From assembly GCA_977017575.1 (NCBI GenBank), contig CDRNVI010000020.1, forward strand, positions 1 through 64,000: 64,000 nt of DNA, given 5' to 3'. Made by a program: the position numbers and the translations under genes. The stretch is from Paramoeba atlantica (lineage: Eukaryota; Protista; Discosea). The notes under the pieces were generated by a model. That model saw nothing but the letters and a program-made list of their open reading frames with translations. It had not been told where the DNA came from and did no database searches. Of the stretch, positions 3,864 through 57,516 are shown in pieces. Every line of letters starts with the position of its first letter. The stretch's first letter is position 1.

Positions 3864-5234
3864 GGGGGGACCTTCGATGAGTACTCATCGTAAGTTGTAG
3901 ACTTTCGATGAGTCTCACGGAAAGTTGTAGACTTTCGATGAGTACTCATCGAAGGTGTTTTTGACTTTTTCACTTTTTCATATTTTACTAAATTTTTGCG
4001 AAGGGCGAACTGTGAGCGTAGTCCTGGGACATAATAATATTTTTTGGCGACCCGTGCGCTCCAGCGCGCGGGTCGCGCACTGAGAACCTGTGTCTACCCC
4101 TTCCGCAGGATTGTCCAGAGGCAAGGCCCAACTGTGAGCGTAGCCCACTTCTGGAGGCAAAAGCCCCCGTTTGCAAGCAAGGCCCAACTGTGAGCGTAGC
4201 CCACTTCTGGAGGCAAATGAATGAAAAAAGGCCTTGCGTGCTATAACGTAAATATTAAATACTAGTAGTACGAAGTGAAGGGGCTCAGACCCCCACACCC
4301 CGCAGCCGAGGCTGGGTGTTGGTGGGTGGGCCTCGAAACTCGTAGTACAGCTACAAAAAGGAAATAAAGTCTACTAAATATGTTGATGTTTGAAAGTCAT
4401 AAACTGAAGAATATGAGAAAGAAGAAACTTATAATACATGTGCCCCGAAGGGCCATATCATAAGTTCATATATTTATGTGCCCCGAAGGGCCAGGTTATT
4501 AAACGTAAATAGCCCTCGCCTAAATTTCATCTCGTAAACTATTAGAGCTACTCCTGATTCTTTTGCTTTGGAGCGTGTGAACACTCCCATGAAAGGTAAA
4601 GAAAGTAAATAATCAACAAGGTACAGAAACTGTATCTTTATCGTTAAAGATTATTGTACGTGTGCTTCTCTCTAGATTCGTGGGAAGCAATTTGCGAAGC
4701 CCAACTACCTTGATAACAAATTTTAGTACCCATTCGTGGGAAGCAATTGGCGATGCCCAACTACCTTGATAACAAATTTTAGTACCCATTTTGGCCGCGC
4801 GGGGGCCCCCGCGTGAGCGGGGGTGCGCGCGGCCGCGAAACGGCGAGGGCCCGCGTGAGCGGGCCTGAGCCGTACCCCGCCTAGGATTCCCCTGTGCGTC
4901 GTTAGTGGGAAGCAATTTGCGAAGCTCACTGAATTTCGTAGTTTTCGCTACGCAGGCGTTGTCAACTTATAGTGAAGTGTTATATAGTGAAGTGTAGGAT
5001 ACTGAACGCACGGAAAATGAAAATCAAAAAAAATTCTTGGGTATTCCACAAAAGTCCTTGACTTCCACCGTAAATTTCCGTTCGTTGAGTACTCAACGAA
5101 CGTACGCCCAACCCAAAATCTCTATTAGAGTCGCTCAAAAACGCTTCGATGAGTACTCATCGAAAGTTGTATACTTTCGATGAGACTCACGGAAAGTTGT
5201 AGACTTTCGATGAGTACTCATCGAAGGTCCCCCC
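3864..5234. mobile_element. Non-autonomous TIR element (MITE-like) with TA target duplication and nested retro-fragments
   Basis: Perfect 27-bp TIR GGGGGGACCTTCGATGAGTACTCATCG / CGATGAGTACTCATCGAAGGTCCCCCC, flanked by TA at 3862-3863 and 5235-5236; subterminal ~31-bp repeats of the palindrome TTCGATGAGTACTCATCGAA at both ends. Confidence 0.8.
4614..4652 (-). ncRNA. Spliced-leader (mini-exon)-like sequence, longest copy (39 nt)
   Basis: Minus strand AATCTTTAACGATAAAGATACAGTTTCTGTACCTTGTTG; CAGTTTCTGTAC occupies positions 21-32 as in trypanosomatid SL exons; followed by a 23-nt UTR and ATG (MGVFTRSKAKESG), not by a GT intron. The exact 5' boundary is uncertain. Confidence 0.8.
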
Positions 5235-5526
5235 TACCCGAGGTTTAATTATAATTATTATTAGTTTACGTGATGAAATTTAGACGAGTATATTATAAGA
5301 GTTTACGAAAAGAATTTTAGGAAGTGTGCAGTGGTTAACACCCCTCGTTTATACACCCCCCAATAAATACTGGTGGGCTGATTGCTTGTGGAAGGAGGAA
5401 AAACTAAGAAATTTACATACATTCATATCCCCCCCAATGGACCTACTTGGTTCGCATAAAAAAAAAAATTGGTTTCATTTTATTTATTCTTGTTCATTAT
5501 GTGTGAGAAAGAAGACGCTGATTTCT

Positions 5527-5718
5527 ATAAGTATACGTTTAGAAATTTAGGATGATTGATATAATGGCCCTTCGGGGCACATAATATTTATATTATGAGA
5601 TATGATTTGTTTGTTTTGTTTATATAAGTGTACGTTTAGAAATTTAGGATGATTGATATAATGGCCCTTCGGGGCACATAATATTTATATTATGAGATAT
5701 GATTTGTTTGTTTTGTTT
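5527..5718 (+). repeat. Tandem duplication (~97 bp x2) of a retroelement 3' UTR module with a cUUCGg hairpin
   Basis: Near-identical units, each containing GGCCCTTCGGGGCAC. Confidence 0.85.
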
Positions 5719-5801
5719 AGAGATTTCATTTATTTAGTTTGGTATAGTGACACTCCTTCTCTAACCTTTTTATTGCGCCCGCCCACCAACCCCCAACCAC
5801 T

Positions 5802-5998
5802 TCGCGGAGTTGGCGGACGGGATGCCCGTTCGTAAGTAAAGGAGTTTGTTGTGGATTTGTTTCAAATACTGTAAGTTTGATTGAAATGGCCAGGTACCTT
5901 AATTTCTTTTCATGGATAGGTGGTGAGGATACTAAAGCAGTTGAATTCTTTGAATTGCTTTATGAAGAAAGATATTACATGATTTAGGAATTGGTTTC
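5802..5998 (+). repeat. ~200-bp direct repeat of 3289-3488 (plus-strand 3' UTR module)
   Basis: TCGCGGAGTTGGCGGACGGGATGCCCGTTCG...GATTTAGGAATTGGTTTC occurs at both sites with few mismatches. Confidence 0.9.
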
Positions 5999-6058
5999 AT
6001 TTTATTTATTCTTGTTCATTATGTGTGAGAAAGAAGACGCTGATTTCGGGCTCTGGAA

Positions 6059-7775
6059 ATGCCTTCGGAGCGAACGGATCCGCGAGAATCAACGTGCTCA
6101 CCACCGCCACCGTCACCTGTGACACAGCAGACGGGGAAGTGGCGCATCTGCATCAAGAAATCGTTCGCTGTGGCAGCTGACGCCATACAAACCGCTTCAA
6201 ACGCAATGTCCGATACAGTTTTCAGCTCCGCAGATAACGTACAATCTGCAAATAACGTGCAACGCGGGGAACTCTACGACTCTCCTTCGGCGCAAAACGA
6301 AGACGTGCATGCACAAATTTTGACAGAACAGAAGCGGCTTCCATCACCACAACCGGTTGACATGCAGCCAATGCCCCCGGCCATGCAGGGCATCCTGCAA
6401 AGCTCTTCGTCGGACGTGATCCCCAACGTTGCTACAGGGGAAGCGATAGACGAAGGAACCACTTTCCACGAATGCATGTCTCCTTCGATATGCGTAGAAA
6501 ACTCTCGCACAGAAAACCCCCCCGAAGAAGCAGAACACCTTCCCGCCGAAAGAAGAAAGCACCCGAGGAGCGACCTCCGCCGCCACCGCCGCCACCCCCA
6601 CCAACACCCCCGCCTCCGCCCTCGCCCGCTCCACCACCATCTCCTCCACCTCCGCCTCCTCCTCCGCCGCCTCTTCAGTCGACGTCACCTTCGACTCCAC
6701 CGTCTCCTCCACCGCCCCAGCAGCCATCGCCGACACCACCGCCGACGCCATCGCCGACGAGAACGCCATCATTGCCGCCACCATTGCCAACGCCAAGAAC
6801 GCCAATGCCAACGCCACGGGCAACCCGAAACCAAGAGAGACAACAGTCTTCTGGAAACTCACCGTCTTCGCCTCCACTGCGTTCCTCCATACCGCCGCCT
6901 TCGTCGTCTCAATTGATGTCGCCGTCCACTCGACCATCACCACAACATACGAATAGTGAAGGAAAATCGAGTAGTACAATCAAAATCAAGAATGCAAATT
7001 TCACATTTGATTTCTTTAAGCGCCGTGGTAAACAGCTCAATTTGATGCAGAAAGAAGCGAGAAACGTCAATCCCATCATTCGTGAACCTGATGGTAGCAT
7101 AAACATTAAAACGAACAATGCTAAGTGCACTGCGTTCACGAACCAAAGCACGGAACTTACGTATGCTAATAGTTAGTTAGTTATTATCCAGCCATTTGTC
7201 TGCGAACAGATGTGGCTGCCTCACTTCACGCGTAGGTCGCGTTGCCGGTGCTCCACGCGAGGAGTAATCTTCTAGCACGAGAGCGGTTGGCTCAATCATA
7301 TAAGAAGACACCGGACTTTAGACAGACATTACCCTAGTTATTTGATGCCTTGTTTTATTGGCATTGGGCAAAACCATCTATAGGAAAGGTGTAATGCCCT
7401 AGTTCTTTAGCATCTTGCTATTTTGATGCCGGGTACCTCCTTTCGTAAGCTTTCTAGTTCGCTTACATATTGTACGCATCTATACCAATATCGTATGTAT
7501 CACTTGTTCCATATAAGTCCTGTATTTCATACGACGTACTTCCTGCCTATGATATCATAAATGGGAAACTTTAATTTAAGTTTCTGAAATCAACGGACCC
7601 TTTCTTCTGCCATAAACTTCGTAAAATAAGGTAAACAAAGAAATCAACAAGGTACACGTATGCTAATGCTGCCACCCCGTCGCCAAAGGATCCCATCACA
7701 ACCGATGACATTGTGCTACGCCCTCTGAATCCGTCGCATAAAGCTATGGAAAATTATCGTCGGATACAAGCTTAA
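6059..7775 (+). pseudogene. Proline-rich ORF of unknown function, interrupted by a SINE-like insert
   Basis: ORFs 6059-6916 and 6472-7176 are probably one frame shifted near the C-run at ~6515; excising 7171-7667 restores '...TELTYANAATPSPKDP...IQA*' ending at 7775. Confidence 0.45.
7171..7655 (-). mobile_element. 485-bp SL-tipped SINE-like retroposon with a 12-bp TSD
   Basis: TSD ACGTATGCTAAT at 7159-7170 and 7656-7667; 5' tip is the last 11-12 nt of the SL (GTACCTTGTTG); 3' tail (AACT)3; two bulged-hairpin motifs; no long ORF. Confidence 0.8.
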
Positions 7776-9678: not shown

Positions 9679-12177
9679 GACTGTATTGACCTGTTCGGTG
9701 AGGAAAACATCTGGAAGTGAGTGACTCGAAGTCCACTTTTATTCGTGCGAAATACAAATAAGAAAAGTCTGTCTAATTTTGCAAATAATATCATACCGTA
9801 GTTCACGAATAAGTCCTTCATGTTTTCCTTAATTCCTGACACTAGTACAAAGGCCCAATTACATTTCCAAGAGTTTTAGAGCATCCGAGGGGAGCGGGAA
9901 ACAAGTTTTTTCCTGCGGGTGTAACTCCTTCAGCTTGCTTAGCGTTTCTTCATTGCTTAATTCATTTTTCTTGAATTCACGGTCCAACACTTTAGCTGCC
10001 TTAGATGCACACCCTTCCAGGGCTAGTCTTGTGGCACGCTTGATGGCCCTTTTGTCGCTCACGTGTTCTTCTTTGTTTTCATTGGCGTTCTGTTGGGTGT
10101 CATTCTGTGTTTCGTCATCTTTCTTCGTCGTGGGTCGCCGGCGTCTAGCTCTTCCCGTCGCAACTCTAGCTGCTGCTAGCGATAATTTCATGGCGGATAA
10201 CAAACAGTGCCATATGCTAGTTCGTTGGGGAAAATCGCTTTCTATGTAGCCGTGTAGTATGTCTCGATAGGTTGCAACGACACACGGAATCATTTCTTGA
10301 GTGAAAGATCTCAGAGTAGGGATTGGCTCGTAGTCGATGTTCCCTGACGCATTGTTTGGGATTATTAGGTTTTCCTGAAACGCTATTTGTTGCGCTGTAC
10401 ACTCGCACTGTTGTTCGTTTGGAAGAGTTTCTGCACTGGAACTGATTTCCACGCTCGGAGCGTTTTGTTGCCATATGATTCGGTAAATGCGTATATTCTC
10501 TATCGGTGGCAGGCTGCCTCGAAATTCCTCTCCAACCATGTATCCGTGAATCCCGGTGTAGATCAAGTTCACTTTCCCTTGCGCTTTGCTGTTTCTTGTG
10601 ACCTTTCCGGCGGAGACATTTAGGTCTGTATTTCGGTCGAATGCCCAAACAACAGTGCATATTGCCCCAGCCTTAGCACATCGAGAGCTATTCCATATTT
10701 CGTGACTTGGGATCGGAAAATCTGTTGTAGGGTTGATAGTTTTTATTAGCTCTATTGTGTCGCAGCTCAAGACTGTGTCGTTGTTTTCACATCTGTTTGG
10801 TGAAGTTGATGCCTGTGGGTTGAATGTTTCAGGTACGGAATCGTCATGACACAAAATGTGTTCCTGATCGAATTCTTCGGAAACAGAGGATTCACAGTCA
10901 TGAAATTCGAAAGTTTGTGGGGAGGAATCAATCGTTTGTGTTGTTTTTGTTGGCGTTTCGATGTCTTCCATCCGTGGATCCGATTCGGTGGCACGGTTTG
11001 TTATGATATCGATATGTTATGATATCGTGGTTTGTCCAGTCTGGCGTCATTGGAGCTTCTCTTTCGCTGTCTGTCGGCGATTTCGTTGGTGTCGGTGAGT
11101 CCACTGTTACTTGATTTTGTTTTTCGTGTACTGAACGCGTCGCCTTCGGGACCACGTGCTTCGGGAAGTCTTCCGATGATTGAGTTTGCATTTCTTCAAT
11201 TGACAGCGCCCTTACTCGCTCCGGTAAGTCCATTTTTGCAGGACCTTTTTCTTTTACTATTGTATCGGTTGTCGAGATCTCTGTCGGAGGTTTCGTACCG
11301 CAAGTTTGTGATTCTTTGGCCATTCGTGTTGCGGCGATTTCCGGCGATCGACCGGGTGATCGAGAAAGCGCTTTCGCATAGGAAATCTCGTTGCCTCTTG
11401 TCGGAGTTTGCGCGACTAGAGGGTGAAAATGTTTAATAATAGGTGGGAGATCATTGTTGGTTTCATTTGGTCTAATGGAGCTGGCACTTGATGTCATGTT
11501 TTCCGCAAATTTCATTCTTCGTTTTGATAGCTTACTCATCGATAGAATTGGCGTTGGCGGGACTGGTTTTCTTCCCACACCTCCGAGAGAAGAATGTTCT
11601 TGGAATGAGTTGGGTGGTATGGACGTACGTGACGAAGTGGTGGGAGAGGAAGCTCGACGCTGATCGCGTGCAAACGGAAAACGCGATGGGAAGTGGGCTG
11701 CAAGTGTGTCATAAAAGGACGGTTTCTTGCGTCCGTTTTTCCCGACTTCATTCTCGGATGCAGTTTCGCTCGCATGTGTTCGATTGCTCGATGCTTCAGA
11801 AGAAGCTGGGTGAGTGGTGGTCGTGCTGGTGTTGGGGTCCTGATTGTCGCGTGAACTATTTTTTGGGAAATCTTTTGGAGTAATCTTTTTGGGGAGTGAA
11901 GAACACGGGTGCGAATTCGTCGTCGATGGCGCGTGTTCTGATGTGACTCGGTTCGTTTCCTTGGGATTGGGCAGTGATGATGCATGTTCTGATCGCGATA
12001 TGATTCGATTCGATTCTTGTATGGAAATCGGGGGCGGTATCGTAGTGCTTTTGAAGCTAGAGAGTAGCTGGATCCCAGCGCGTGCGTCAAATTGCATTGC
12101 ATTATTTGCGAAGTAGATTTTCCTACGTCGAACAAGGTCTTTGGTCGATGCTACCAGCGGATTTGTCTGTTGATGGG

Positions 12178-12592
12178 GCGGTGATGGGGCTTGAGCCGAT
12201 TCTTGTGCGGGATTTGGCGGCAGTGATGCGCGTTCTGGCCGCGGTGTTGTGACTTGATTGGATTCTGGTGCGGGATTTGGCGGCGGTGGTGCGCGTTCTG
12301 GCCGCGATGTTGTGACTTGATCGGATTCTTGCGTGGGATTTTGCGGCAGTGATGCGCGTTCTGGCCGCGGTGTTGTGACTTGATTGGATTCTTGTGCGGG
12401 ATTTGGCGGCGGTGGTGCGCGTTCTGGCCGCGGTGTTGTGATCTGAACGGATTCTTGCGGGGGATTTGGCGGCGGTGGTGTGTGTTCCGGCCGCGGCGTT
12501 GTGATCTGAACGGATTCTTGCGGGGGATTTGGCGGCGGTGGTGTGTGTTCTGGCCGCGGTGTTGTGACTTGATTGGATTCTTGCGTGGAATT
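12178..12592 (-). repeat. 63-bp coding tandem repeat (~6.5 copies, 21 aa NPxQESxQ(V/I)TTPRPExxPPPP)
   Basis: Visible in both the DNA and the translation of ORF 10928-12787. Confidence 0.92.
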
Positions 12593-12807
12593 TGTTGTCA
12601 AAGTTTTCCGATGCGTTTCTTTCGTGCTCGAATTGGCTGGCGAAGAGACTCCTGTTTTGAGAAAAACATTGGACTTCGACTTGCATGACCTTATGTGCTT
12701 CGGCGGGTCAGGCGGACGATCTGAAAGTCGAACTCCGAGCGCAGCAGCCACGCTTCGTGTGAGCATCGGCATGGAAAAGTAAGACAATTAAAAAAAAGGC
12801 AACAACT

Positions 12808-12845
12808 CAACAAGGTACAGAAACTGTATCTTTATCGTTAAAGAT
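12808..12845 (-). ncRNA. SL-like exon copy at the 5' end of a CRE element
   Basis: ATCTTTAACGATAAAGATACAGTTTCTGTACCTTGTTG, followed by a 35-nt UTR and ATG. Confidence 0.8.
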
Positions 12846-12852
12846 AAATATA

Positions 12853-14410
12853 CATGGGTGGGCACCTTCAGAGTGGAGGGGTCTAAAATTCGTAAAACTT
12901 GTTCAATTTTGGAAAGTAATAGCGCATTCGTGAGCTCTCAAATAGTCTGGTGTAATCGTAAAAATCACTCTGCGAAAGTATACGGGAATCAAAGAAAGCT
13001 AGAATGGTCCCAAACACGAATTGCAACTTTATTTTTTAAGCGAAAAAGTCCTTTTTTTCCAAAAAAAATCTCAGTACCCACAATTTCCCCCTTTTTTCTC
13101 AATAACGATTTGAAAGCGCTTGGAGACACTCTTTATGGTCTTCACGCAAGTACTTTTGAGATCGGTTTGAAGTGCCTCGTATGCACTCTCGATAGAAGAG
13201 AGGAGATCTGCGCGATTGCGTGGTCGCATGCGATCCTTGTGCTGATCCATGATATTCCACAAGTTTTCGATGGGGTTGAGATCCGGTGACTTTGCGGGCC
13301 AGGGGAGCGTTCGCACGTTTTGCTGCTGAAAAGTACGCCTTGCCAAGTTGTGCGCAGGGCAATTGTCCATAGCAACAACTGCACGGTGCCTGTGTAGGTA
13401 GTTCAAAAGACCATTACGCTTGGTCATGGCAGCTTCGAAAACAGCCCCGTTCACAGTAACTCTATTTCCCTGCTCATCTCTATTAGGAAAAATGTGCAGA
13501 TGAAATCCATGCTTTATGCTTACCCCCATCCACACCATTATACCATCGCCCCCTACCCACGCTTCCAGCTCACCTAGCTGCTCTTTTACAGGGTCGGACC
13601 GTCGGCAAAGGTAGGTGTTTTTGGTAGACTTCTTGCAGGTAAACTTTTTCTCATCACAACAAATAATATTATCAAGCTGGTGTTCGCTCCAGCCCGACAT
13701 GTCCTTACAGAATCGGACTCTAACGTCTTTATGCTGTTGGGTTAGTCGTGGTTTACGCTGAACTACGCGGAGGATAATATCGGGCTTCAAAGCTCGAGCC
13801 AAAGTGCGTCTGGAACACTGAAACCCTCTGGATAGAAGTTCGCGATGTAGAACGCACCATGATTCCACACCATAAGGAAGATCCCGTGTACCCTCATCTA
13901 CTATGCGGAGTGCTTCTCCGATAAACAGTGATGTCCTAACTGTAAAATTCAGACGTCTGGGAATGCTTTCGACATCACCAGTTTCGCTGTAACGAATGAC
14001 CCATCGCTTCACAGTGCTCTCCGCTACTTCAAAATGGCGTGCTGTAGCATTGTAGGACCCAGAACGAAAGTAATGGTCTACGAGAAGCATGCGATGCGAC
14101 GGCCTTACCTTCCCAGGTGGTGAATAAGCATCTCTCTGGAAGAGAAACCGTGATGTTCGCGATCGTACACGTTTCTGAGGCATTAACGGCGCAAAAAAAC
14201 TAAAAAAAGCCAAAAAAACTGAAAAATTGCATCTTCGGGGAAAAATAAATTCCTTGTTTTTCTGTCATTTATCTCGAATGTCTAAAAACGGGAAACGGAT
14301 GTTGCCATTACACCAGACTATTTGAGAGCTCTCGAATGCGCTATTACTTTCCAAAATTGGTCAAGTTTTACGAATTTTAGAACCCCCCTCTCTGAAGGCG
14401 CCCACCCCTG
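12853..14410 (-). mobile_element. Tc1/IS630-superfamily DNA transposon, apparently intact
   Basis: 104-bp imperfect TIRs (12853-12956, 14307-14410); TA on both flanks; uninterrupted transposase ORF. Confidence 0.93.
13071..14213 (-). CDS. Tc1-like DDE transposase (380 aa)
   Basis: HTH 'YNATARHFEVAESTVKRWV'; catalytic motifs 'CCDEKKF', 'MDNCPAH', 'WPAKSPDLNPIENLW'. Confidence 0.93.
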   Translation of the reverse strand: MAFFSFFAPLMPQKRVRSRTSRFLFQRDAYSPPGKVRPSHRMLLVDHYFRSGSYNATARHFEVAESTVKRWVIRYSETGDVESIPRRLNFTVRTSLFIGEALRIVDEGTRDLPYGVESWCVLHRELLSRGFQCSRRTLARALKPDIILRVVQRKPRLTQQHKDVRVRFCKDMSGWSEHQLDNIICCDEKKFTCKKSTKNTYLCRRSDPVKEQLGELEAWVGGDGIMVWMGVSIKHGFHLHIFPNRDEQGNRVTVNGAVFEAAMTKRNGLLNYLHRHRAVVAMDNCPAHNLARRTFQQQNVRTLPWPAKSPDLNPIENLWNIMDQHKDRMRPRNRADLLSSIESAYEALQTDLKSTCVKTIKSVSKRFQIVIEKKGGNCGY

Positions 14411-14429
14411 TATATATATATATATATAT

Positions 14430-22935: not shown

Positions 22936-22939
22936 TCGG

Positions 22940-41295: not shown

Positions 41296-42274
41296 CTTTT
41301 TTTTTGCGGCATTGCCTCTATATTTTTACCCAATACTTGAACCCTGTAGGTCCATCGGGGGGGTATATGATTTTAAAACAAGCAATTAAATTAGCAATTT
41401 CATATTTTGGAGCCCAAAACTAGCAATTCGATCTCCCGTAAGTATAAGACCAATAATAACAATTTCTTTTTTAGGCTCTTCGTTAAACGCGGTGGTTGCT
41501 TTCAACTTAGAAGTCACTCGTGCTGCGCGCTTCGCGTTGAAAACTACCTCCGCGTTTAACGAAGAGCCTAAAAAAGAAAATTTAGCCTGGAAAACGGAAA
41601 GATTATAGCCAAAAATAGCCGAATTTCGGGTACAAATGGGGTGATTTTCGCATATTTTTGCTCTCAGAGCACTAAATCCGACATTTGCGCGTGGGAAATC
41701 ACTCGCAGGCATGAATGAAAGCCTACCGAACGTATTGGGTAGAGAATGCGACTCCAACCATACCATTCTTTCGACACAAAAATGCCCCTTTAGGTCCGAA
41801 AAATACTTTTTCACCTTTTTTAGTCAAAAATGGGTCATTTTGGGGGGCGCACCACAGTTCGAAGAAGTGATACCTTGCGAAAACAACTGCGTAGAAAGCT
41901 AGTGTAGGTCCCAAACTATCAAAATACAATAGGGGAAACGATTTTGGAAAAATATTTTCTTTGTCATTTTTTTCGCCAAGTTAAAATTTTTTTCAAAAAA
42001 TTTTTTCCGAAAAAATCCGAACTTGGCGGACCCGTCCTGCGGATACGCGGGGGGGTCACCCCCGGGTAGGGGGGTGGAAAATGCGCGCCAAGACCCCGGC
42101 TACCCTTTCTGCGGTTTTTTTTCGAAAACTAATTTTTTCAAAAAAATTTGCTCGACCATGCCCCCCCCCCTGGACCCCCCCCTGGACCCCCCATTTTTTT
42201 CAAATTTTTTTTTCAGTTTTGGACCAATAATCGAGTGTAGAGCGGTAGTTTTACAACCACCGCAATAACAATAA

Positions 42275-42529
42275 AAACAAGCAATCCAGGCCCAATCCAT
42301 TCGCGCGTTCCGGACCGGGTCTTTCGACCTCTCCACGGCCTGACTTGTGAACCCTTCCCTTGCTATACGGGAGGGCGCAGGCGCGGGCCTGTGTCGACAG
42401 CGACACGGTCGCGAAACAGGATGCTGGTCGACGGGGAGGAGATTCACTACCCGTGTACTACCTCACTTGGGGTACCTAGCCCTGACGGACTAGGCGTGAG
42501 CATAGACTCTGTCGACGCGACCAGCATCC
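42275..42529 (-). ncRNA. Conserved ~255-nt structured RNA in CRE family B 3' UTRs (also 46579-46834, 52011-52264, 57826-58057, 59454-59709; partial 53098-53135)
   Basis: Near-identical copies behind divergent ORFs; 12-bp stem GGATGCTGGTCG/CGACCAGCATCC with G-U variants; tetraloop hairpins; one compensatory C-G to U-A change. Confidence 0.7.
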
Positions 42530-45500: not shown

Positions 45501-46362
45501 CTCTTGGCAAGGGATGTGAGATGCGATTTTACAGCTCTTCGAGTGTGAGTGTTCTTTCCCTAAGTCGTAGTGGCGATTGCATGTGTGGCATCGGAAACGG
45601 CCTTCTTCTCTCCACCATGAATCCGGAACACTGTCTCCATGTTGCGAGGCAATGTGGTTGAAGTATGCTTGCCAACTTCCACCGTGTGATGGCGCGTCCC
45701 AATTGCAGCCGGGTGCTGGGCAGGCTCTTCGTTGTTGTGATGATTGGAAATAAGGTACAGCTTCATCGTGAGAGGGAGAGTGATTCGGTGGTTCGGCGGC
45801 GGCTGATTGTGTTTGAGTTGCGGATGGCTGTGTCAAACATGCTTCATCAAGATCCATTGCAGGTAGAACTTCCTTATCAGGTGCCGGTTTTCTACCCTTA
45901 GAGTTATGTTTCTCGGGGGCTCGTCGGCCAACTGGCGTTTTTCTGTATCCTTTCAGCTCCCCTCGGAGAACGATGGAGTCCTGTGACATACTATTCGTTT
46001 TTCTGGGTGTCTTTGGAAAACGGCGAACTGAGGAACTATCGGGAGGTTGTCGCTGAACGCTGGCGTGGTTTGACTCTTCACACTCCCCTAATTCGATTCC
46101 CATGTCGGGCGTCCCCCCCTCGACAACCAAAGTGGCACATGCTGCTTCCGTTCGTCTGGTCCATTCGGATGGAACGTGCGCAGGGATCTCGGTGGTGTAG
46201 GCAAGTTCGTTGTAGGTGCTGGGGCCGGATATTAAATGTTTGTTACCCTCGAATTGATCCCAGGAACCAAGTGTGTGCCTTTTTTCTTCTTCAAGGAAAG
46301 ACTTTTGGCTGGTCATGGAAGGAACCGCGTACCTGGAAAAAGATGAAATGAGGAAAATAATT

Positions 46363-46396
46363 CAACAAGGTACAGAAACTGTATCTTTATCGTTAA
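46363..46396 (-). ncRNA. SL-like exon copy (34 nt) directly after the poly(A) of the upstream element
   Basis: A11-G-TTAACGATAAAGATACAGTTTCTGTACCTTGTTG-UTR-ATG on the minus strand. Confidence 0.8.
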
Positions 46397-48010
46397 CTTT
46401 TTTTTTTTGAAACGCGGCATTGCCTCTATATTTTTACCCAATACTTGAACCCTGTAGGTCCATCGGGGGGGTATATGATTTTAAAACAAGCAATCAAATT
46501 AGCAATTTCATATTTTGGAGCCCAAAACTAGCAATTCGAACTCCCGTAAGTATAAGAAGAATAATAACAATAACAATAAAAACAAGCAATCCAGGCCCAA
46601 TCCATTCGCGCGTTCCGGACCGTGTCTTTCGACCTCTCCACGGCCTGACTTGTGAACCCTTCCCTTGCTATACGGGAGGGCGCAGGCGCGGGCCTGTGTC
46701 GACAGCGACACGGTCGCGAAACAGGATGCTGGCCGACGGGGAGGAGATTCACTGCCCGTGTACTACCTCACTTGGGGTACCTAGCCCTCGCGGGCTAGGC
46801 GTGAGTATAGACTCTGTCGACACGACCAACATCCGGACCAGAGGATGCAAGAGAGGATAGAAGCGGGTCCGTAGGTATAGGCCTATGTCGCTACCATTGG
46901 ATCCGTTGGATCTGGCACGCAGATACGCGAAACCATCATTCTGGCTTGTGATCTCATTAACGCAACGTTCAGCTCCGTAAGGAGTTCATTTCGTGCTTGG
47001 CTGCGAGACATGAGTTCTTTCGACGCGTTCGCTCGTTGCGTTCCGATGTCGCGGAGGAGCGCTAAGGCACTCTCACTCCAGGAGCCAAATGATTCCACAA
47101 CCATGGCTGTGAAAAGAAACCCGGCCTCGGTTGCTTCCTGTCGCTGTCTCGCTTTGGTCTGTGCGTAGTGCTCGGCAAAAGACCCTGGGGCCACCCAGCT
47201 AGCATTATGGACTGAGTCCAAATACTTTAGTTGCTGTGCGTGGGTGACCGCAAAATCTAGAACCATGCCTTGCGCTACAGTGCCCTTGGCTAAGGATGCA
47301 GTTGGTAGGAAGACGTCCGCTGGTCTTGTGAGAGCTCCTCCTGGCCCTCGATTTCCCAAACTCTTCTCTCTCTGTGGTTGAAGGAAAGCTTTGCTGCAAA
47401 AGGACGTAAATTGTTGAGCTACGGCATTATGTTGTGAGATTATACCGTGTCCATTCTTACAGAGCAAAGCGTGCTCTCCATTTTTAAGTAAGGGAAGGGT
47501 GCAGCCGTCAGCTGGGCAAGGTTGATCCTCCGGCAAGATATTCATCCCGAGCCACCAGCGTGTCAGAGTCCGAAACTCTGTGTGGGTAAAAGCTTAGCCT
47601 CTGCTCTTGGACGGTGTTACAAAAGCCCAGTTTCCGGCCCCCCTCCCTGATTGAGAAACCCATCGTGCCCTCGTCCTTGCGTCTGTTTTCATGTACGCAG
47701 CCTGGAATTCATTTTCCGATATTGCTTGGCTGAGATGCCTCTGTCGTGGTATAATGGTTTCCTGTTCGGTGGAGTCGGAGGGGAGAGTGTTGTTGAGAGA
47801 TGTGGTATATTTTCGTTTAGCTAGGCGGGACCGGGTGCCTCGTCCCTCATGCTGTTCAGCTAGAGAATTGGGTTTGGCAATGCGTCCAGTGATCGTGTCA
47901 ACTAGATCAGCTCCGACTTTGTCGTTTATGTCCCGGACGGAATCAGAGAATCCTTCTGCTTCGGTTGGTTCCCAGCCATCCATGTTAGCAGAAAAAGTGA
48001 TAGAGGAAAC

Positions 48011-48632
48011 GGTGAAACTGAACCAATATTCGCACTTTTCTCAATCTGGCAAAATTTTTACCTGAACGTTTTATCGCTCCTTTCTTTTATTCTGAATCAT
48101 GGTTCTGCACATTAATTTTATATAATCATTGTGTTTTTTGAATCCATTAGTACTTGTTTATTGCTCTTCTCACCTTTTAATGACATGCACTGGGTGCGGT
48201 GGGTTCTCGTGCCGTTCGAAACTTACGATCAGAAGAAGTTCTTCCTGGAGTGAGAATCAATGTCTGGACTGGATGAAAAACCACTCTCTAGTGGCGCAGA
48301 AAGTTATTTGCTACAAGAAAAATCACAGAGCTCCGCACACCATGGCATTAGTCGGGAATAAATGGGTCTGCACCAAGCATTGTAAAGGGAGGTACGGAGC
48401 TATGGGGCCGCTGTTGCCCAGCAAGAGCCAGCGAAGCGCTAAACAGACTCTCATGTACATCGTTTTGTACTGTAGGGGTGGGCGCCATGTGTCTTCAGTG
48501 GCGGAAACGGAGTTAAGAGTTAAACGGTGATTAAATTGCGTCAATGACTGGATTCCCTCATGGCCTCAGCGCATATAAGGGACGTGAAATTTTGAAAATT
48601 CATAAATTTGCGAATATTGGTTCAGTTTAACC
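48011..48632. mobile_element. 622-bp MITE with 24-bp TIRs and an 8-bp TSD (Merlin/IS1016-like ends)
   Basis: TIR GGT(G/T)AAACTGAACCAATATTCGCA; TSD GAGGAAAC at 48003-48010 and 48633-48640; no transposase. Confidence 0.85.
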
Positions 48633-51359
48633 GAGGAAACATATGCAGCTGACTGGTGGAGCAATGATGAGCGGAGTCCGAACCCCCCGTGGCGTTTCGG
48701 TCGTTGGATTTGGTCGCGAGCGGAAAGGTCCAGGTGGGAAATTGCATGTTCCACGGCGTTGAGCAAATATGAATCAAGCCGTTGGCATAATTCCTTGACG
48801 GCTTGTGGTGGGGTTGTGGTGGGGTTGTGCGTAGTGCATATACCATTTGACAAAATCCTGCACATTGCCGTATTAGCGCGAGGGCCACTTGCGGGTCTTC
48901 TAACACTGCGGTAGCTTCCAATGTATCCCGGGCTGGCTCAATCGCGTGTGTCTCTAGGAATTCCATACAGTGCTCCGCAGAGCCAATGGGGCTTCCAAGG
49001 GTGTCGAAGTTCCCATCGTAGCGGATTTTCTCGCTCGGGATATCGGGGAAGAAAACGGAGGTGTGGGCTGAAGCTGGAGGAGTAATAATCTCACACTTGG
49101 TGAGGTTTAGGAAAAGCCCGCACTTCGGCCCTATCTCATCGAGGATGTCTAGGGCCTTCCGGACTTCACTCGGTTCGCCTACAAGTATGCCGTCGTCGAG
49201 ATACCACAACTGTGTTCGTAAGTGAGAGCGGGACGCTATTTCCTTCGTTACCTCTGCTAGGGCCAAAGAGAAGAGAAGAGGGCCTAACGGATCTCCTTGT
49301 TGCACGCCTTCCGCCGAAGGAATGAAATCGTCACCGAACGTGAGACAGCTGTGGTTTCCGTAGCACCATTCGACCCATGGCGATATTTCAGGAAAATGTT
49401 CGCGTTTCAGGAAAATAAAAACCGGCCTACTTACGTTGTTGAAGGCGTTCCTGAGGTCCACTTTGCAAAAGGTGATGTTGTCGTTCTCCATGTTGTTCCG
49501 CATTAGCCGGCGGCAAAGGTGGATTACCCGTTCTGCTCCAGCAGCCGCTGCAACCCCATACTGTTTGCGTCCGAAAAAGGAACCTGCTTTTTGTTTAATT
49601 GAGAGACACACTGCCTTGCTTACGAGACGTCGAAGGGTTTCTCCTGCAGCTATAGGTCGCACGTCATCATTCCCCTTTTCGAGGGCGCAGAGCCGTGCAC
49701 CAGCAAAGAAGGGGTGTACTTCGTCTGGAGCTTTGCCAGCTAGCAGGTGATTCACAAAGGAAGTGAGTGTCATGAGAGGGTCCATGTTGTGGTCAACGTG
49801 CTCCTGAAGTGCTGTTTGGAGGTGTTCAGGTCTAAGCCCCATGGTTCCAGCAGAGGACCCACGGTGGAAACTATTGACTGCCTTTTTGACCTCAGATTCG
49901 TCGAGCTGCAAAACATCCACTTGCAAAGGAGGTAGGGGACTGGATATAGGGTTTGCGTGAGGACTGGGGTGCTTTTTTTGTAGCTTTTGCAGAGTTTCCT
50001 CATTGTACGGCGCAAGTGGCGCTGCAGTAAGGGCGGCCATGCCTCTCGAATATTCTCCCTGACGGACCAAAAGTTCTGATCGTACCTGAGATTTATCCTC
50101 CACATTCTCATTGCTCTGTTGCTTCGAACGTTTCCTTTCGTTGTCCCTAATCGCTTCGGACCATAAGGTTGCGTATTTTCCTTCAATCCAAAGCTCCATT
50201 CGCTTGAGAATATACGAGGAATATGACGTGTGAGCTTTGCGACCGCCGCGGTAAGGGGCTGGTAGAACGCATTTCGGGAGTATTGCCAGGAGCGTCCACG
50301 CCCTTACTGAATTTTCGTGCACCGCGGAGGAAAGGGCTGTAGTCAAAATTTTGGTCCACAAATATCGGCATCGATGCGGGACGTCCTTACAGGTGCTGAT
50401 TGAAGTCGTGCATATTTCGTCCAATGATGGTATATCGTTGGTGCCGTGAACGTCGTAAAAAGTTTCCCCTAGGGGTTCTGATGGGTGCGGGGAAGAAGCT
50501 GGCTGCACAGATTGTCCTTTGCATTGATTCTCGTGTGATGTCTTCTTGCTGGACGCATAATGCCGTCCACATTCGTTGCACAAGAAGCGTCCTTCGTTAT
50601 CCCACCAGATGCTGGGAATGCTCCCTCCGTGTCGATAAGCCACATGGCTATAATACGATTGCCATTGCCCTCCGTGGGCGTGTGCTTTCCAATTACAGTT
50701 TTCTGCGGGACACTCCCGTTGCCTAGGGCCTTCTTGAGAGCTCGGTATGTTCGTAGTGGTTTCGTCACCTGTCGGCGTTGGGGTTTCGAGGGTCGTTGTT
50801 TGTGATATAGTCTCCGGAAGGTCGCTATCGTATGGACTATGTGGGATACTATGGTCGATCGCTTCCATTGTTCTTGTGTTGGTTTTCTGTCGCGTCTCCT
50901 GAGATTTCCCAATGCCCCGAATTTGTCCTTTAGCACACGGAGATGTGGCCGGTGACTTGCGACGGGAAATTTTTTTCGAAACTGAAACATTAGTGGGTTG
51001 TGTTGTTCGTGAGCTGTGATTTGTGCTGATGAGAACGCGTGCGTGGGTCGTTTCCTCGTCGCCGTCATTTCTGTGTCCAGTGTCTGGTGTTTGCTGGTCA
51101 GTCGAAATTAAGGTGGCTTTCTGACACCAGTCTTCAGGGATGTTTTCCGGGATCGGTGTGGTGTATAGCAATTCGTTATATGAGGTGGGCTGTTTGATTA
51201 GTTGAGCATTCCCCGCAAATTGGTCCCAGGATCCTGGTTGGTGCGCTGCTTCTTCTTGCAGGAACGAATCTTCTTCCATTCGCGTTGACTCTTCAAAGTG
51301 GTGGTCTCCGGACATTAAGGTAGCCGTGTACCCGGGAAAAATATGAGATAAAATATAGT

Positions 51360-51396
51360 CAACAAGGTACAGAAACTGTATCTTTATCGTTAAAGA
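51360..51396 (-). ncRNA. SL-like exon copy (37 nt)
   Basis: TCTTTAACGATAAAGATACAGTTTCTGTACCTTGTTG, followed by a 44-nt UTR and the ATG of ORF 48622-51315. Confidence 0.8.
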
Positions 51397-51640
51397 GGTG
51401 GCGATGGCGTCGATGGTGCGGGGGGTGGAGACCTCTTTGAGGGCGAAGCGGTCGGATGCGTCCCCACGACAGCGATGGTTGGAGGAGACTTTGGGGCAAC
51501 AGGCGCTGTCTTTTTCCTGCGGCGAACGGGGGCGAGAGGCAAAATCACAGGAGCTGCTCCTGTTTCCTTTGCCTTGGAGCGGGTGACCACTCCCATGAAG
51601 AAATAAGAATAAGTAAAAGAAAGCAACAAGTGCCTGTTAG
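51397..51640 (-). pseudogene. 5' tip of the family A element seen at 34642-37360 (MGVVTRSKAKETGAAPVILPLAP...), fused directly to the next SL
   Basis: 51397-51570 is near-identical to 37190-37360; ATG at 51596. Confidence 0.85.
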
Positions 51641-51651
51641 CTTCTTTGGTG

Positions 51652-51784
51652 TTAAGATCACTTTTTGTATTAAGATCACTTTTTGTATTAAGATCACTTT
51701 TTGTATTAAGATCACTTTTTGTATTAAGATCACTTTTTGTATTAAGATCACTTTTTGTATTAAGATCACTTTTTGTATTAAGAT
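51652..51784 (+). repeat. 18-bp tandem repeat TTAAGATCACTTTTTGTA x7.4
   Basis: Perfect copies with no spacers, between a poly(A) tail and an element 5' tip. Confidence 0.95.
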
Positions 51785-52607: not shown

Positions 52608-53219
52608 AAGAAAGGGAGGGTGATTCCTCCCTTTTTTTTTTTTTTTTTTATTCGATTTCACCTGCCTGCAGACCTGTCAGTAAGTTTGTTTTTTTTTTTT
52701 TACTCTAATGACTAGACAATTTTTGAGGGTACACTTTTTTTTTTGAATTTTTTTCTTGCTTTTTTAAGACCCATCCCCTCAGCTCGCAGCCAACCAACCC
52801 GAGCACACGTCACGTCGCGTAATTCATACCCGAGCACGTGTCAGTAACCCAATTACTCGCTACCGACTGACTCGTCCGCCCCCTTTTTTTTCTGATGATT
52901 CTATATAAATAAGTTTTTTTTTTTTTTTTTTTTTTTTCTTGTCTTGTTTTTTTTTTTTTTCTTACGAGTTGAAAACAAGCAATCAAATTAGCAATTCTTT
53001 TTGTTTCCACAGATGTACCTTTTGTTTTTTCTCAGCCCAAAACTAGCAATTTAATCTCCCCTAAGTATATACTACAAACAAGAAACAGTAAAAACTAAAA
53101 CAAGCAATACAGACCCAATCCATTCGCGCGTTCCGATTTTCTTGCTTTTAATTTTTTTTTTTTTTTTTTGCAATTAATAGGGGGGAAGAGTATGAGTTCT
53201 AACTTTCTATGAATGTACG

Positions 53220-56200
53220 GTATCAGTTTTTTTTTTTTTTTCAAATTTATCTCTATAAATCAATCTACAACAAATCACTCTATTTGACGAAACCAAACCA
53301 AAGAAAAGAAAAAGAAAAAAAAATTCATCACCCTCTAATTCAGGAGCAGAGGTGGATCCGGGTCATCTTCTGCCATCCGCGCCACCATCATACGAGCCTG
53401 AGCTCGCATTAAAGTGACATTCAAGTCACGGATGAGATTTGCCGTCGCCGTTCCCCTGTCCATCGTCCCTTGGGACGTAGCAGAGCGCCACGCTCCAACC
53501 TTCTTAAGCACAGCGAGGGCGCTGTCGGACCACGAGCCATAGGAGCCTACGACCATGGCCGCGAAGTCGTGCCCAGCAGTCTCGGCGTCCCGTCGCTGCA
53601 CCTGCTTATGGCTTGTGGCATAGCTCTCGGCGAATGATCCCGCCGTCACCCCGTTAGCGTTACGGACGAGGTCCGCGTATTTGGGTTGCTGAACGTGGGT
53701 AACGGCGAAATCAAACACCAGAGACTTGCCTAAGCCAATGCTGGGCAAAACGACATCACCAGGCCTCGTGGGCGCTCCAGCGGGACCGCGATTGCCAAGA
53801 CTTACCTCCCGTTGGGGGGCGAGGTGCGCCTTACTGCAGAAATCGACAAATTGACACGCCAGCGCGTTGTGGCGCGTCATGATGCCATGTCCACACTTAC
53901 AGGACACGGCATGGTCGCCTTTTGGTCCCAACGGTTGCCGACACCTCCCCATAGGACAGGGCCGCGTTCCGGGGTAAATGTCTGCTCCCAACCACCAGCG
54001 GGACAAGGCGCGAAACTCAGTAGGAGTGTAAGAGTATCCTCTCTCCTTGGAGGGAATAACGAATGCCCAACTCGCGGCCCCTCTCCCAGTTTGCGAAATC
54101 AAACGTGCGCGTGTGTTGCAGTCTGCTGCCTCATATGCTGAAGAAAATTCCCGGTCGCCTATCTCGCGACAAAGGTGTTTCTGTCGCGGGATAATCAGCT
54201 TTTCATTCATCCCGGCATCTAGGCTGTGATCATGGTGTGCATTGAGAGGGTTGGTTGATGCGTTATAATCTTTGTGGATTAGTGCCTCCTGTATTTTGCC
54301 GGTTGTCGAATCCACCAAAGTCTTTCCCGCCTGGCGGTTAACAGGCTCCACTGCCTCGGAAAACCATTTCGCCTCTGACGGTGCCCAGTCATCTTGAGAA
54401 CCCGCAAAGGCTGCTGAAGAGACATAAGCTGCAGATGAATGTATAACGGAGGATCTTAGGCCAAAACCACCGTGTCTCTTGTCGCGTTGGATTTGTGCTC
54501 GTGCCGGGGCGTCTAGAGGACAGAGTATAAGCTCCGTAGCGCGGAGCACGGCGTTATCAAGCCTCTGACAGAGGTCTACCATGTATTTTGGTGGCGTTGT
54601 GCGGAGGGAGTAGACTAATTGGCAAAAGCCAGAGCAGTGGCGAATTAGCGTGAGGGCTACCTGTGGGTCTTCTAGTATGCCTATCGCCTTTAGAGTTGCT
54701 TCCGCAGGTTCGATCGCAAACTCACGTAGGTATTCAATACAGAACTCTTCTGACCCTACTGGGCTACCCAAGATGCTAAAGTTTCCTTCGTGATTTTTCA
54801 TTCTGGCTGGGATGGTAGTGAATGAGTCCGTGCAACGCGAGGATACCGGATGAGATATTATCTCGCATTTACTCGCATTAAGATGGAGCCCCCACTGAGG
54901 TCCCGCACATGCTATAGCATCCAACGCCCTCCGTACGCTGTCGGATTTTCCGGCCAAAACACCGTCATCGAGATACCAAAGGTGCAAGAGGAGTCCGCTG
55001 GGCACTTCATTCTCGATCAGTTCAGTAATCTCTCGCAGAACCATGGAGAAAAGGAGGGGCCCTAAAGGGTCCCCCTGTTGAACTCCTTCGGTGGAGGCAA
55101 CTGTTTGAGAACCATATGTGAGTGCGCTATCGGTGGCGTAGCACCAATTTATCCAAGGAGTCAACTCGGGGAAGTGCTTTTCTGATAGGGATATGAACGC
55201 CGCCCTGGAAACCGTATTGAATGCGTTACGAAGGTCCACCTTGCATAAGACAAATTCTGGGTCATTCTTTGTGGACTCCACCACTTGGCGGCAGAGGTGG
55301 ATAACCCTTTCGGAGCCAGATGCCGTTGCCACACCATATTGACGTCCTTGGAAAAGTGTGCTAGCTTTGGACTTTACAACAGAGCAGGCAGCCTTGCTGA
55401 CCATGCGGCGCAACGTTTCCCCTGCTGCGATAGGTCTTACATCATTTTGCCCTTTCTGCAATGCACACAATCGAGCCCCTGCGTAACATTGTTGTGCTTC
55501 AACTGGAGCCTTACCGGCGAGTAGGTGATTGGCAAGCTTTGTGAGACTCTCGAGGGGATGAACATCCGTGTCAGTTCCAGCGAATAATGCCGCTTGTATG
55601 TGTTCCGCTCGTAGCGCCATGGTTCCACCTGAGGAGCCCCTGTTAAAGCTTTGGATCGCCTTTCGTACATCATCCTCATTGACAGTCAAGTAAATGATTT
55701 CGTTGGAGGACGGTGCGCTTTGGCGTAGTGGACCGAACAGCCGGCTCGGGTGCTTGGTGACTAGTTTGTTATATGTCTCCTCATTGTCGGGTGCCATTGG
55801 CGCCGAAGTGAGTGCAGCTATTCCTCGAGAAACTTCTCCTTGACGGACCAGTAGTTCGGAGCGAATCGCTTTCTTTTCCTCATCCAGTAGTGTACCTGCT
55901 CCGGATCCTTGCTTCCTCTTCTTCTGGTGTTCAAGTACAGCTTCTTTCCACAGGGCTGAATATTCGTGTGCTTCCCAGCGATCCAGACATTTCCGCACGT
56001 GGGAGGCGTACGAGCTATTTCCCTTTCGTCCTCTTCTATGCGGGGCTGGAAGGACACATTTCGGAAGCATCGCTAGTCGTGTCCATGCAGCGACGGTGTT
56101 CTCCCTCTCGGCTGTTGCGACGGTGGCTGTTAGGACCGTAGCCCACTGGCGTCGACATCGGAAAGGAACGTCTTTGGACGTGGTCATAGGTGTTGTACAG

Positions 56201-57516
56201 ACGGCTCTTAGGCTAGGGAAACATGGTGGGTCTATAGTGGGCGGTAAGCTAGATTCCTCTGGCGTCTCTGAAGGGTACGCGGGGTCAGGAAAATCTGTTG
56301 TTGGTGATGGCTGTGTGGGAGGTGGGTCCGCCCCGTAGCATTGAATTGAATGGGCTTCCTTCTTGGTCAACACAAAATGTTTGTTGCACACCGTGCAAAG
56401 AAATCTGCCTTCACGTGCCCATCACTCTAGCGGTATGCCTTCGGCGTGTCGGGAGGCCACATGATTATAAAAAGCTTGCCATTTGCCGCCGTGGGATTGT
56501 GCGGACCACGCACATCCGTCTGCCGGACAGTACCGACGTTCCGGGAGCGGCGGGTCCCCCGCAGAATGAAGAGGTGGCACGACAGCTTCCGTTGCAGGAC
56601 CAGCTAGAGTCACAGCGCGGTGAGGGTCGCATAGTACGGTCTCCTGAGTTGAGTCAGTCTCGTCGGTTGGGGATACAGGAATCGATAAATCAAAGCTAGG
56701 AGGATTGCTCAAGGTAACAGAGAACGAGGTGGGGGGAGCAGGTTGCGGTGAGACACAATTTCGTTTACGTGTGCAGAGGTTTAGCGTCACAGGGGGGTCA
56801 TGACCTGGTGCGGCAACGTCCTTGGAACGAAGTGAAAGCAGACCACGCGTTTTCAATATAATGCTCCCGACCAGGCATGCGACTGTCCAAGTCACCGTGC
56901 ATCCTAGGGCGAGGACGTTCCCTACAATAACACTAGTGTACTTTAGTATGAAGAAGACGATCGTCACCAGTACGTATGCAAACTGTATGTATGTGATGGG
57001 AACTGTCAATAGGCGCCTCCACTGCGCCGTGCGGGCTGGGGCGTGTGCACGCTTACAGCACTGGTGTCTGCACGTCGACTTTACCTTGCAGCTGTGGTGG
57101 CACGGTTTCGTGGACAGATTTTCCTGCGTCGCGTGTGGCCGCGTGAATTCCGTACCAGTGTTGAGACCGCGCTTGCAACAACTGTGTTTGCATGTCAGTT
57201 TGTTTTTACATATGTGTTTGCAAAGATTAGTGGAATCTTCGCGAGGGAGATCAGAAATTTTTACCGGTGAATCCGTCGGAGAAGTTTTTGCGTCGTGGGG
57301 GTTTGGAAGCAAGGAATCCTTCAGGGGGCGGTTCTTATGTCCGTGGCACAAAGGTAAGGGTGGAGTTTCAATGTGTTGGCCCGAGCGTATGGCTACGGAG
57401 CGAGTCAACGCGACCATTTGGAGAGGATTAGGAAATAAATCAACAAGGTACAACAAGGTACAGAAACAACAAGGTACAGAAACTGTATCTTTATCGTTAA
57501 AACTGTATCTTTATCG
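53220..57516 (-). mobile_element. CRE family B element, full length (one in-frame TGA at 56422), with a stuttered SL
   Basis: ATG at 57417 (MVALTRSV); ORFs 56422-57456 and 53335-56391 are in frame across TGA ('GIPLE*WAREGRF', where homologs have WW); RT 'GVQQGDPLGPLLF...WYLDDG'; RLE 'RPGDVVLP...DFAVTH'; short UTR and poly(A). Confidence 0.93.
57441..57516 (-). ncRNA. Stuttered SL-like block (four overlapping partial copies)
   Basis: Minus strand: A8, CGATAAAGATACAGTT, TTAACG...CCTTGTTG (34 nt), TTTCTGTACCTTGTTG, TACCTTGTTG, then UTR. Confidence 0.82.

Follow-up and report, generated by a model that had tools for sequence, protein, structure and literature searches.

R2-like LINEs headed by a host spliced leader, very probably a fossil of the RNA that was copied

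Long interspersed nuclear elements (LINEs) must rebuild a usable 5′ end in each generation, and their solutions comprise internal promoters, ribozymes and residence in a promoter-bearing host gene. The first 64,000 nucleotides of contig CDRNVI010000020.1 of Paramoeba atlantica (GenBank assembly GCA_977017575.1, forward strand; C20:1-64000, hereafter ‘the window’) raise the question of what a spliced-leader (SL) exon does at the 5′ tip of several retroelements. Does it mark SL genes which were hit by insertions, or did it belong to the RNA from which the elements were copied? We consider the latter very probable, and the leader copies would then be DNA fossils of the 5′ ends of element RNAs. 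That trans-splicing put the leader on the LINE RNAs appears to us fairly probable.

The 32-base core of the leader has five exact matches in the window, all on the minus strand (4614-4645, 12808-12839, 46363-46394, 51360-51391 and 57467-57498); shuffled sequences are expected to give none and gave none. The last 12 bases of the leader are also found at 7645 (minus strand), 57441 (minus), 57451 (minus) and 61373 (plus). The sites at 57441 and 57451 are partial repeats stacked just downstream of the full copy at 57467, while 7645-7656 is a 5′-truncated 12-base stub followed by a pyrimidine-rich untranslated region (UTR) and an ATG, with no intact open reading frame (ORF) behind it. The plus-strand site belongs to a 15-base stub (61370-61384) followed by CTTG and a run of 15 T. 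A seven-base stub, CTTGTTG (51624-51630, minus strand), heads an element which we call A2. A sequence-only reading of the same stretch had proposed six sites: the recurrence of an SL-like sequence on the minus strand holds, but 57441 is a relic whose full copy lies at 57467, and at 57516, the end point of that reading, there begins an additional partial leader piece which lies upstream of this copy.

Alignment of the flanks of the five copies delimits a common block which extends from leader base 3-5 to ...CCTTGTTG. The DNA on either side of it is unrelated between copies, with a single exception upstream: 4614 is preceded by a 280-base piece of the 3′ UTR of group II, one of two carrier groups described below, and this piece recurs ahead of the leader in other copies. 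Directly after the leader, four of the five full copies continue with A and a pyrimidine-rich stretch, as had been claimed for all; at 57467, the full leader is followed by relics of 16 and 10 leader bases and only then by A. The first ATG lies 23, 35, 46, 44 and 23 bases past the end of the (last) leader, in agreement with the range of 23-46 nucleotides given before. An SL intron (GT) is absent behind every window copy, as already noticed from the letters, and an SL promoter is absent upstream, the flanks being unrelated DNA or the poly(A) tails of other elements. No window copy has the promoter or the GT intron which, together with a tandem unit, mark a bona fide SL RNA gene.

A nested insertion places the leader within the inserted DNA. 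Three group I LINEs on the minus strand, D (from its leader to a poly(A) of 11), C (from its leader to a poly(A) of 9) and the 5′-truncated X (to a poly(A) of 14), constitute a 14,031-base head-to-tail block inside A2, a group II LINE. This block is flanked by two copies of a 176-base sequence, 99.4% identical (left copy 51395-51570, right copy 37188-37363, minus strand). The left copy lies behind the start codon of A2 and reaches up to the leader of D; the right copy lies behind the poly(A) of X and runs on into the A2 frame. When the block is removed and 51596-51395 is joined to 37187-34642, 916 codons are read without an internal stop. The repeats and the closing of the A2 frame therefore identify D-C-X as one block between target-site duplications, with the leader of D as the first inserted sequence. 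Contig C41 provides a second case: there, CCAAGGA repeats flank a group II insert which begins with leader bases 19-38. The earlier proposal that the leader was mobilised with the element, instead of being left over from an SL gene, is supported by its place within the target duplication and by the lack of a promoter upstream and of an intron downstream. No clear empty site was observed in the DNA runs.

The joint between the poly(A) of D and the leader of C (window 46398) is repeated at C63:390094 (L075) with one extra G, which means that D and C were either duplicated as a dimer or copied in one piece. The window also contains three further pairs of direct repeats of 180-230 bases and 99.5-100% identity (3290-3487/5801-5998, 16816-16997/17144-17325 and 31738-31964/32214-32440), which flank 2.3 kb, 146 bases and 249 bases, respectively, and may be additional long target duplications.

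Where, then, are the genes which encode the leader? The sequence-only reading had suggested a search for true SL RNA genes, and these were found outside the window. In the assembly (45.7 Mb, 248 contigs), the leader core has 554 matches at no more than one mismatch, with about 550 copies scattered, and the intron start GTATGAGAAGCTTCG... is present in only 39 copies. Thirty-three of these carry at least 100 identical upstream bases and the 38-base exon AACTTTAACG...TTG; they are SL RNA genes, organized in tandem units with a common promoter, the intron GTATGAGAAGC and a linked 5S ribosomal RNA (rRNA) gene. The remaining intron copies are retrocopies of unspliced SL RNA which begin at base 3-4 and end in an A-rich tail. 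The genome possesses a functioning kinetoplastid-type spliced leader, and no window copy is an SL gene. In an Rfam search the SL unit matched 5S only and no SL RNA family, and a literature search returned no match to the leader sequence. A metagenome scan yielded one contig with the SL gene repeat of a relative, which has the same exon and a different promoter. In the irregular SL arrays of C74 and C11, no LINE adjoins the SL genes.

Retrocopies of the whole unspliced SL RNA are among the loci L043 and L056-L058. At L051 (C25:199053), the SL intron was retrocopied alone; this copy begins at the first G, has an A-rich tail and immediately follows the poly(A) of a group I element. These two kinds of copies imply that by-products of trans-splicing are also reverse transcribed. 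Leader matches followed by GT number 163; minus the 39 real introns, about 120 are left, most of which probably represent one dispersed family (8 of 11 inspected). In this family, the 3′ part of the leader, starting between base 8 and base 23, is followed by GTACATTTT and a conserved hairpin CCGGAAACGGGC..., which is not a real intron, and the upstream DNA is variable (L031-L034, L037-L040 and L148:3585, minus strand). It looks like a short element which either derives from SL RNA or inserts into leaders.

If the leader belonged to the copied RNA, the insertions should bear marks of an RNA template. We sampled 80 non-redundant leader copies, which correspond to 69 independent junctions. The copies end at leader base 1-5, and most often they begin at base 3 (39 of 69 independent junctions). 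In these 39, the preceding base is T in 31 cases and the preceding two are AT in 22, while all 33 SL genes read AA: an A to T change at base 2 is recurrent in the copies and not present in the SL genes. In the X5 data set, possibly RNA, the sole contig which reaches the 5′ end of the leader also reads AT and has no mismatch to window positions 4614-4651. The change would reflect misreading by the reverse transcriptase of a modified base beside the cap.

A second set of marks concerns the joints. An extra partial 5′ piece of the leader is located upstream of 12 of the 80 copies, and 26 of the 80 lie directly behind a poly(A) run (about 40 when a short filler or a partial leader piece in between is tolerated). 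Copies truncated within the leader (L143) or within the UTR (L144) also lie behind poly(A). Such copies rule out an upstream element targeting the leader as the cause of this adjacency, which therefore belongs to the 5′ joint of retrocopies and was produced by template jumps or by entry at A-runs. Joints between poly(A) and leader contain 0-9 filler bases. The joint between leader and UTR is exact and free of filler in every family and is therefore not itself a jump joint. The extra leader pieces, the filler at the poly(A)/leader joints and the truncated copies behind poly(A) are marks of template jumps. Polyadenylation in group I took place at many positions within about 100 bases, a scatter which processed mRNAs would be expected to show.

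Four X5 contigs bear the leader, followed in each by a different sequence; in three of these contigs the leader is located at the end. Within window positions 1-6000, X5 covers the leader only and leaves the host U-box gene uncovered. If X5 is indeed RNA, this pattern fits a leader shared by many RNAs. In a small sample of 21 leader copies, the first ORF behind the leader belongs to group I, group II or other repeats, and no recognisable host gene was among them.

Tandem arrays of leader-headed units occur at L139 (C22:137-156 kb), C21:0-12 kb, C75:70-110 kb and C1:9.7-25 kb, with spacings of 2.28 kb, 3.4-3.8 kb and 5.09 kb. The 2.28-kb array on C22 is the only one whose junctions were read, and two of its consecutive units share an identical poly(A)-filler-leader junction; a dimer junction was therefore amplified at the DNA level. 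The commonest leader-headed family (L007, L089, L102 and others) comprises 647 first-look candidates, many at 99% identity. It encodes only a short proline-rich ORF (MGGHPPQ...) and may be a non-autonomous partner of group I.

What are the carriers? From 9 to 61 kb the window consists of nested retroelements whose reverse transcriptase ORFs are all on the minus strand. All-against-all comparison separates two groups with about 25% reverse transcriptase identity between them: group I (E, D, C, X and F) and group II (A1, A2, B and several truncated copies). The head of E (57441-57516) is composite, with a leader piece of bases 9-25 at 57500-57516, the leader from base 5 at 57467-57502 and the relics of 16 and 10 bases at 57451-57466 and 57441-57450. 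Its body (53152-57440) contains a 5′ UTR, ORF1 (from the ATG at 57417 to 56422), ORF2 (53335-56391, reverse transcriptase and restriction-like endonuclease), a 3′ UTR and a poly(A) of 18 (53152-53169). D (46398-51395) begins with the leader from base 3 (51360-51395), has its ATG at 51315 and a broken ORF, and ends in a poly(A) of 11 (46398-46408) which adjoins the leader of C. The latter (41297-46397) starts with one extra G ahead of the leader from base 5 (46363-46396), followed by an ATG at 46316, a frameshifted ORF and a poly(A) of 9 (41297-41305). X, third in the head-to-tail series (37361-41296), lacks a leader and ends in a poly(A) of 14 (37361-37374).

In group II, the 5′ end of A2 (51571-51630, minus strand) holds the seven-base stub, a UTR and an ATG at 51596. 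The element resumes at 37187 and extends to 33955, with a reverse transcriptase ORF at 34642-37341 and a poly(A) of 12 (33955-33966). B (9880-12843, minus strand) carries the leader from base 3 (12808-12843) and an ATG at 12772, and is cut off near 9880 by a fragment of a recombinase-type element. A1 (4545-4971, minus strand) consists of the 280-base group II 3′ UTR piece (4652-4971) and the leader (4614-4651, with AT at bases 1-2), behind which the first ~70 bases of a group II element (ATG 4590) precede other insertions.

The best solved relatives of the three reverse transcriptases tested are R2 proteins. Pfam recognized RVT_1 only in the carrier ORFs, and no apurinic/apyrimidinic (AP) endonuclease. 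The C-terminal half of E ORF2 displays conserved CCHC and RHN..E..RPxD..D motifs, and its predicted structure (confidence score pLDDT 73; the prediction covered group I only) has significant fold matches only to R2 structures, over ~500 columns at an E-value of 4e-7. The R2-type core of the reverse transcriptase and the thumb-linker-endonuclease architecture, both features of the R2 superfamily, are present. The two carrier groups thus consist of R2-like LINEs which encode a restriction-like endonuclease. When LINE clade names were sought by protein searches and in the Atlas, only unnamed reverse transcriptase clusters were retrieved, some of them from sponges and other animals, and no named CRE or SLACS. 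The initial assignment of the carriers to two CRE families holds only in part: there are two LINE groups with this type of endonuclease, but the fixed SL-gene target which defines CRE elements is not found here. A relative with 41% identity on a metagenome contig has no leader-like 5′ end; another with 54% identity is from the same species, because it bears the same leader.

Further features accompany the carriers. The first ORFs of group I (ORF1), of group II and of the recombinase type all start with a sequence like M-x-x-(x)-T-R-S-[KR]-A-K, 23-50 bases past the leader (window 57417, 51596, 4590 and, on the plus strand, 61885; L005, L011, L018, L099, L104, L113, L127 and L128). It may be a common 5′ module or a common signal. 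An 18-base tandem repeat of ~8 units (51650-51783, minus strand) separates the 5′ stub of A2 from a group I poly(A). In B, the N-terminal ORF contains 63-base repeats (12178-12594, minus strand) similar to those reported inside CRE elements. Amid the retroelements there are also Tc1/mariner-like DDE_3 transposase ORFs (13071-14213, minus strand; 32739-33512, plus strand). The sole clear host gene of the window encodes a U-box/TPR protein (1401-2897) on the plus strand, opposite to the element nest.

How might such elements propagate? LINEs of both groups would be transcribed into RNAs with the capped host leader and a poly(A) tail, and their own reverse transcriptase would copy these RNAs at a nicked target. 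The enzyme would usually reach leader base 1-3, misread base 2, and then either join the target or jump to the 3′ end of another RNA. Such jumps would generate head-to-tail chains inside one target duplication, and would place about half of the leader copies right behind poly(A). The likeliest way for these RNAs to gain the leader is ordinary trans-splicing of read-through transcripts; most dispersed copies would then be dead ends, with a few source copies which retain a true acceptor feeding each family.

Evidence for trans-splicing as the source of the leader is limited to the recombinase-type element. Its unspliced acceptor region (9761-9780, minus strand) reads TTAG, then ACAG, then ACTTTTC, and in other copies the leader is joined after TTAG (L128) or after the next AG, ACAG (L001). 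Both joints lie directly behind an AG, which is what trans-splicing predicts. Among the LINEs, nearly every full-length copy bears the leader, including all close copies of C; in the commonest family, 38 of 41 scored copies begin within leader bases 1-6 and another two are simply truncated at the 5′ end.

Several observations count against trans-splicing of the LINE RNAs, or leave the RNA origin less secure. A search for LINE copies in which a polypyrimidine-AG acceptor takes the place of the leader had been proposed as a check, and none was found among ~100 copies sampled. When transcripts read through a dispersed copy, splicing should use the strong polypyrimidine-AG immediately ahead of the ATG, yet no copy with this joint exists in two families, and re-splicing at this downstream site was rejected for this reason. 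A DNA-encoded leader cannot be re-spliced at the same joint because it ends in TTG, and despite this ending diverged subfamilies all have the same joint. The relics of 10 and 7 bases in 5-6 copies besides E do not lie behind AG. One of the 34 promoter-exon copies in the assembly, on C41, has no intron. The assignment of X5 to RNA is only a guess. Two SL gene variants (two genes each) are confined to SL genes and never occur on elements; these genes may be silent, and for this reason the variants are uninformative about leader renewal. The dispersed LINE copies look like dead ends. The original proposal that trans-splicing adds the leader and that the reverse transcriptase copies it to the cap therefore survives in part: the leader very probably was in the mobilised RNA and the recombinase-type joints lie at AG, whereas for the LINE RNAs trans-splicing is no more than fairly probable.

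The contig C41 offers a different source. A search for the SL promoter and exon followed by A gave one hit (C41:280831). At this locus (C41:280811), a poly(A) of 26 precedes 963 bases which are 98.5-99.6% identical to the upstream region of the SL unit; these lead into a complete exon (AAC...) and then directly into AATTATTTTCTTTATTTC... of a group I LINE which is young and matches dispersed copies exactly over its first 80 bases. The LINE is interrupted by a leader-headed group II insert and ends in poly(A), and neither SL-unit DNA nor an intron lies downstream. On this basis, a few master copies located exactly behind an SL exon could yield RNAs with leader and element from the SL promoter, without trans-splicing. 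Dispersed leader-headed copies would be off-target progeny, and new masters would arise when the leader end of the complementary DNA (cDNA) pairs with an SL exon. Such a source, which we regard as unlikely but as a live alternative, would account for the fixed joint, the missing AG acceptors and the absent downstream-AG forms; the RNA would not donate its leader either, the joint being TTG/AA without GT. Only one of 34 promoters is fused, however, and the C41 copy is split by a later insertion. Dozens of families, some of them very young, have no such master in the assembly. With no intron or SL-unit DNA downstream, C41 may also be a by-product of homology-guided joining or recombination, of cDNA leader pairing with an SL exon, or a read-through retrocopy, instead of a source driven by the SL promoter. 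An interpretation of C41 as two SL units was rejected, because the match downstream belongs to an independent 380-base repeat. This repeat has an A run at one end and its own target duplication, CGCGCTGGGAA.CC; it occurs in both orientations in the SL locus of C3 (L041:174-552 and 845-1224) and near the fusion (C41:293294-293672).

Transcription might also start inside the element. The leader and the conserved UTR start (AATTATTT...) would then act as an internal signal for initiation at leader base 1, comparable to Pr77 of the trypanosomatid retroelements L1Tc and ingi, which is reported to bind factors of the SL-gene promoter (PMC8190864). In 32 of 80 copies, drawn from families with only ~50% protein identity, the leader is followed by AATTA, and the leader copies are almost all exact while the adjoining UTRs differ by 10-25% between subfamilies. 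The known SL promoter, however, precedes the exon and is missing from the copies, and the AATTA motif is absent in group II and in recombinase-type elements; we judge an internal start to be improbable.

At a similar, marginally lower level we place capture of the leader during reverse transcription, where the enzyme, having reached the 5′ end of an unspliced element RNA, would switch to SL RNA or to a free leader exon at its 3′ end, in the manner of U6/L1 chimeras. Template jumping is very frequent among the leader copies, in E, L008, L022 and L086 the stacked pieces begin again precisely at the final base of the leader, and the intron retrocopy at L051 documents that by-products of trans-splicing are copied. 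Recognized jump joints carry 0-9 filler bases, in contrast to the exact leader/UTR joint of every family; moreover, nearly all full-length copies bear the leader and both recombinase-type joints fall right after AG. Lastly, site-specific CRE-type insertions into SL genes, where the known kinetoplastid LINEs with this endonuclease (CRE1/2, SLACS and CZAR) reside (PMC12278014), can practically be dismissed, since the flanks of the window copies refute SL gene remnants: no copy has a promoter upstream or an intron downstream, the full exon is present and not split at base 11/12, and the leader lies within a target duplication inside another element.

The preferred reading, a leader inherited from the copied RNA, has several consequences. 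Two LINE groups and at least one recombinase-type element start with the host spliced leader, in several hundred copies. As every mRNA needs the leader for capping and translation, the templates of transposition would be processed, translatable mRNAs, and each full-length insertion would bear a built-in tag of its RNA origin. The copies constitute a natural in vivo record of the behaviour of a reverse transcriptase, with template jumps, stops near the cap and a fixed misreading of base 2, and C41 is a concrete locus which links these elements to the SL-gene-resident lifestyle of CRE and SLACS. A bolder proposal, which we put forward as speculative, combines these points: the leader would be a portable 5′ module, pairing of the cDNA leader with an SL exon would put an element behind the SL promoter as on C41, its RNA would then dispense with trans-splicing, and the base-2 change in hundreds of copies would be a fossil of an RNA modification close to the cap. 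If true, the elements would be a living link between R2-like LINEs which roam freely and CRE and SLACS, which are strictly bound to SL genes.

How do these elements relate to known systems? R2 reverse transcriptase is capable of end-to-end template jumping, and the head-to-tail chimeras described here fit that ability. R2 structures (8gh6, 9nl3 and 9dou) are the best and only significant matches for the reverse transcriptase and for the thumb-linker-endonuclease half. Unlike R2, the elements have no 28S rDNA target, their flanks being other repeats, and their 5′ end is set by the host leader and not by rRNA co-transcription and a ribozyme.

SLACS and CRE are transcribed from the SL gene which they interrupt. 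With the CRE clade (CRE1, CRE2, SLACS and CZAR) the elements share a kinetoplastid-type host, as judged by its SL RNA genes, a reverse transcriptase with a C-terminal restriction-like endonuclease, a poly(A) tail, internal repeats, target duplications which are variable and sometimes large, and a link to the spliced leader. CRE elements occupy one fixed position inside the SL gene exon (PMC12278014). In contrast, the elements described here reside in other repeats and possess the whole exon as their own 5′ end, while the 33 SL genes are intact.

L1Tc and ingi offer a parallel in Pr77 (PMC1874656, PMC8190864), which is a short conserved module at the 5′ tip of different kinetoplastid retroelement families. 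There it is presented as an element-owned promoter and ribozyme which gives unspliced RNA, whereas the module here is the host leader. The endonuclease also differs, being restriction-like and not of the AP type as in L1Tc/ingi. Mammalian U6/L1 chimeric retrocopies arise when several RNAs are copied in one event, head to tail in one target duplication. The partners here, unlike those of U6/L1, are mostly element mRNAs joined poly(A) to leader, and such joints are far more frequent (about half of the leader copies).

In the literature library which we searched, mobile elements of kinetoplastids which begin with the leader are not described. Dinoflagellate retrogenes carry relict spliced leaders as a result of mRNA recycling (PMC6050394, PMC5585692, PMC12014239). 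As in that system, a DNA-encoded leader marks the 5′ end of retro-copied units outside SL genes and tags their RNA origin. One stacked relic, the 16-base piece of E, starts right after an AG (CAG) inside the leader, like the dinoflagellate relics, but most relics do not lie behind AG. In contrast to dinoflagellates, most copies here have one complete leader without a relic, and the tagged units are mobile elements and not host genes (the 21 sampled first ORFs are element-type or unidentified). Leader-tagged retrocopies in dinoflagellates and SL-linked LINEs in trypanosomatids are already known, and the closest parallel to the elements of this window is the recycling of host genes in dinoflagellates.

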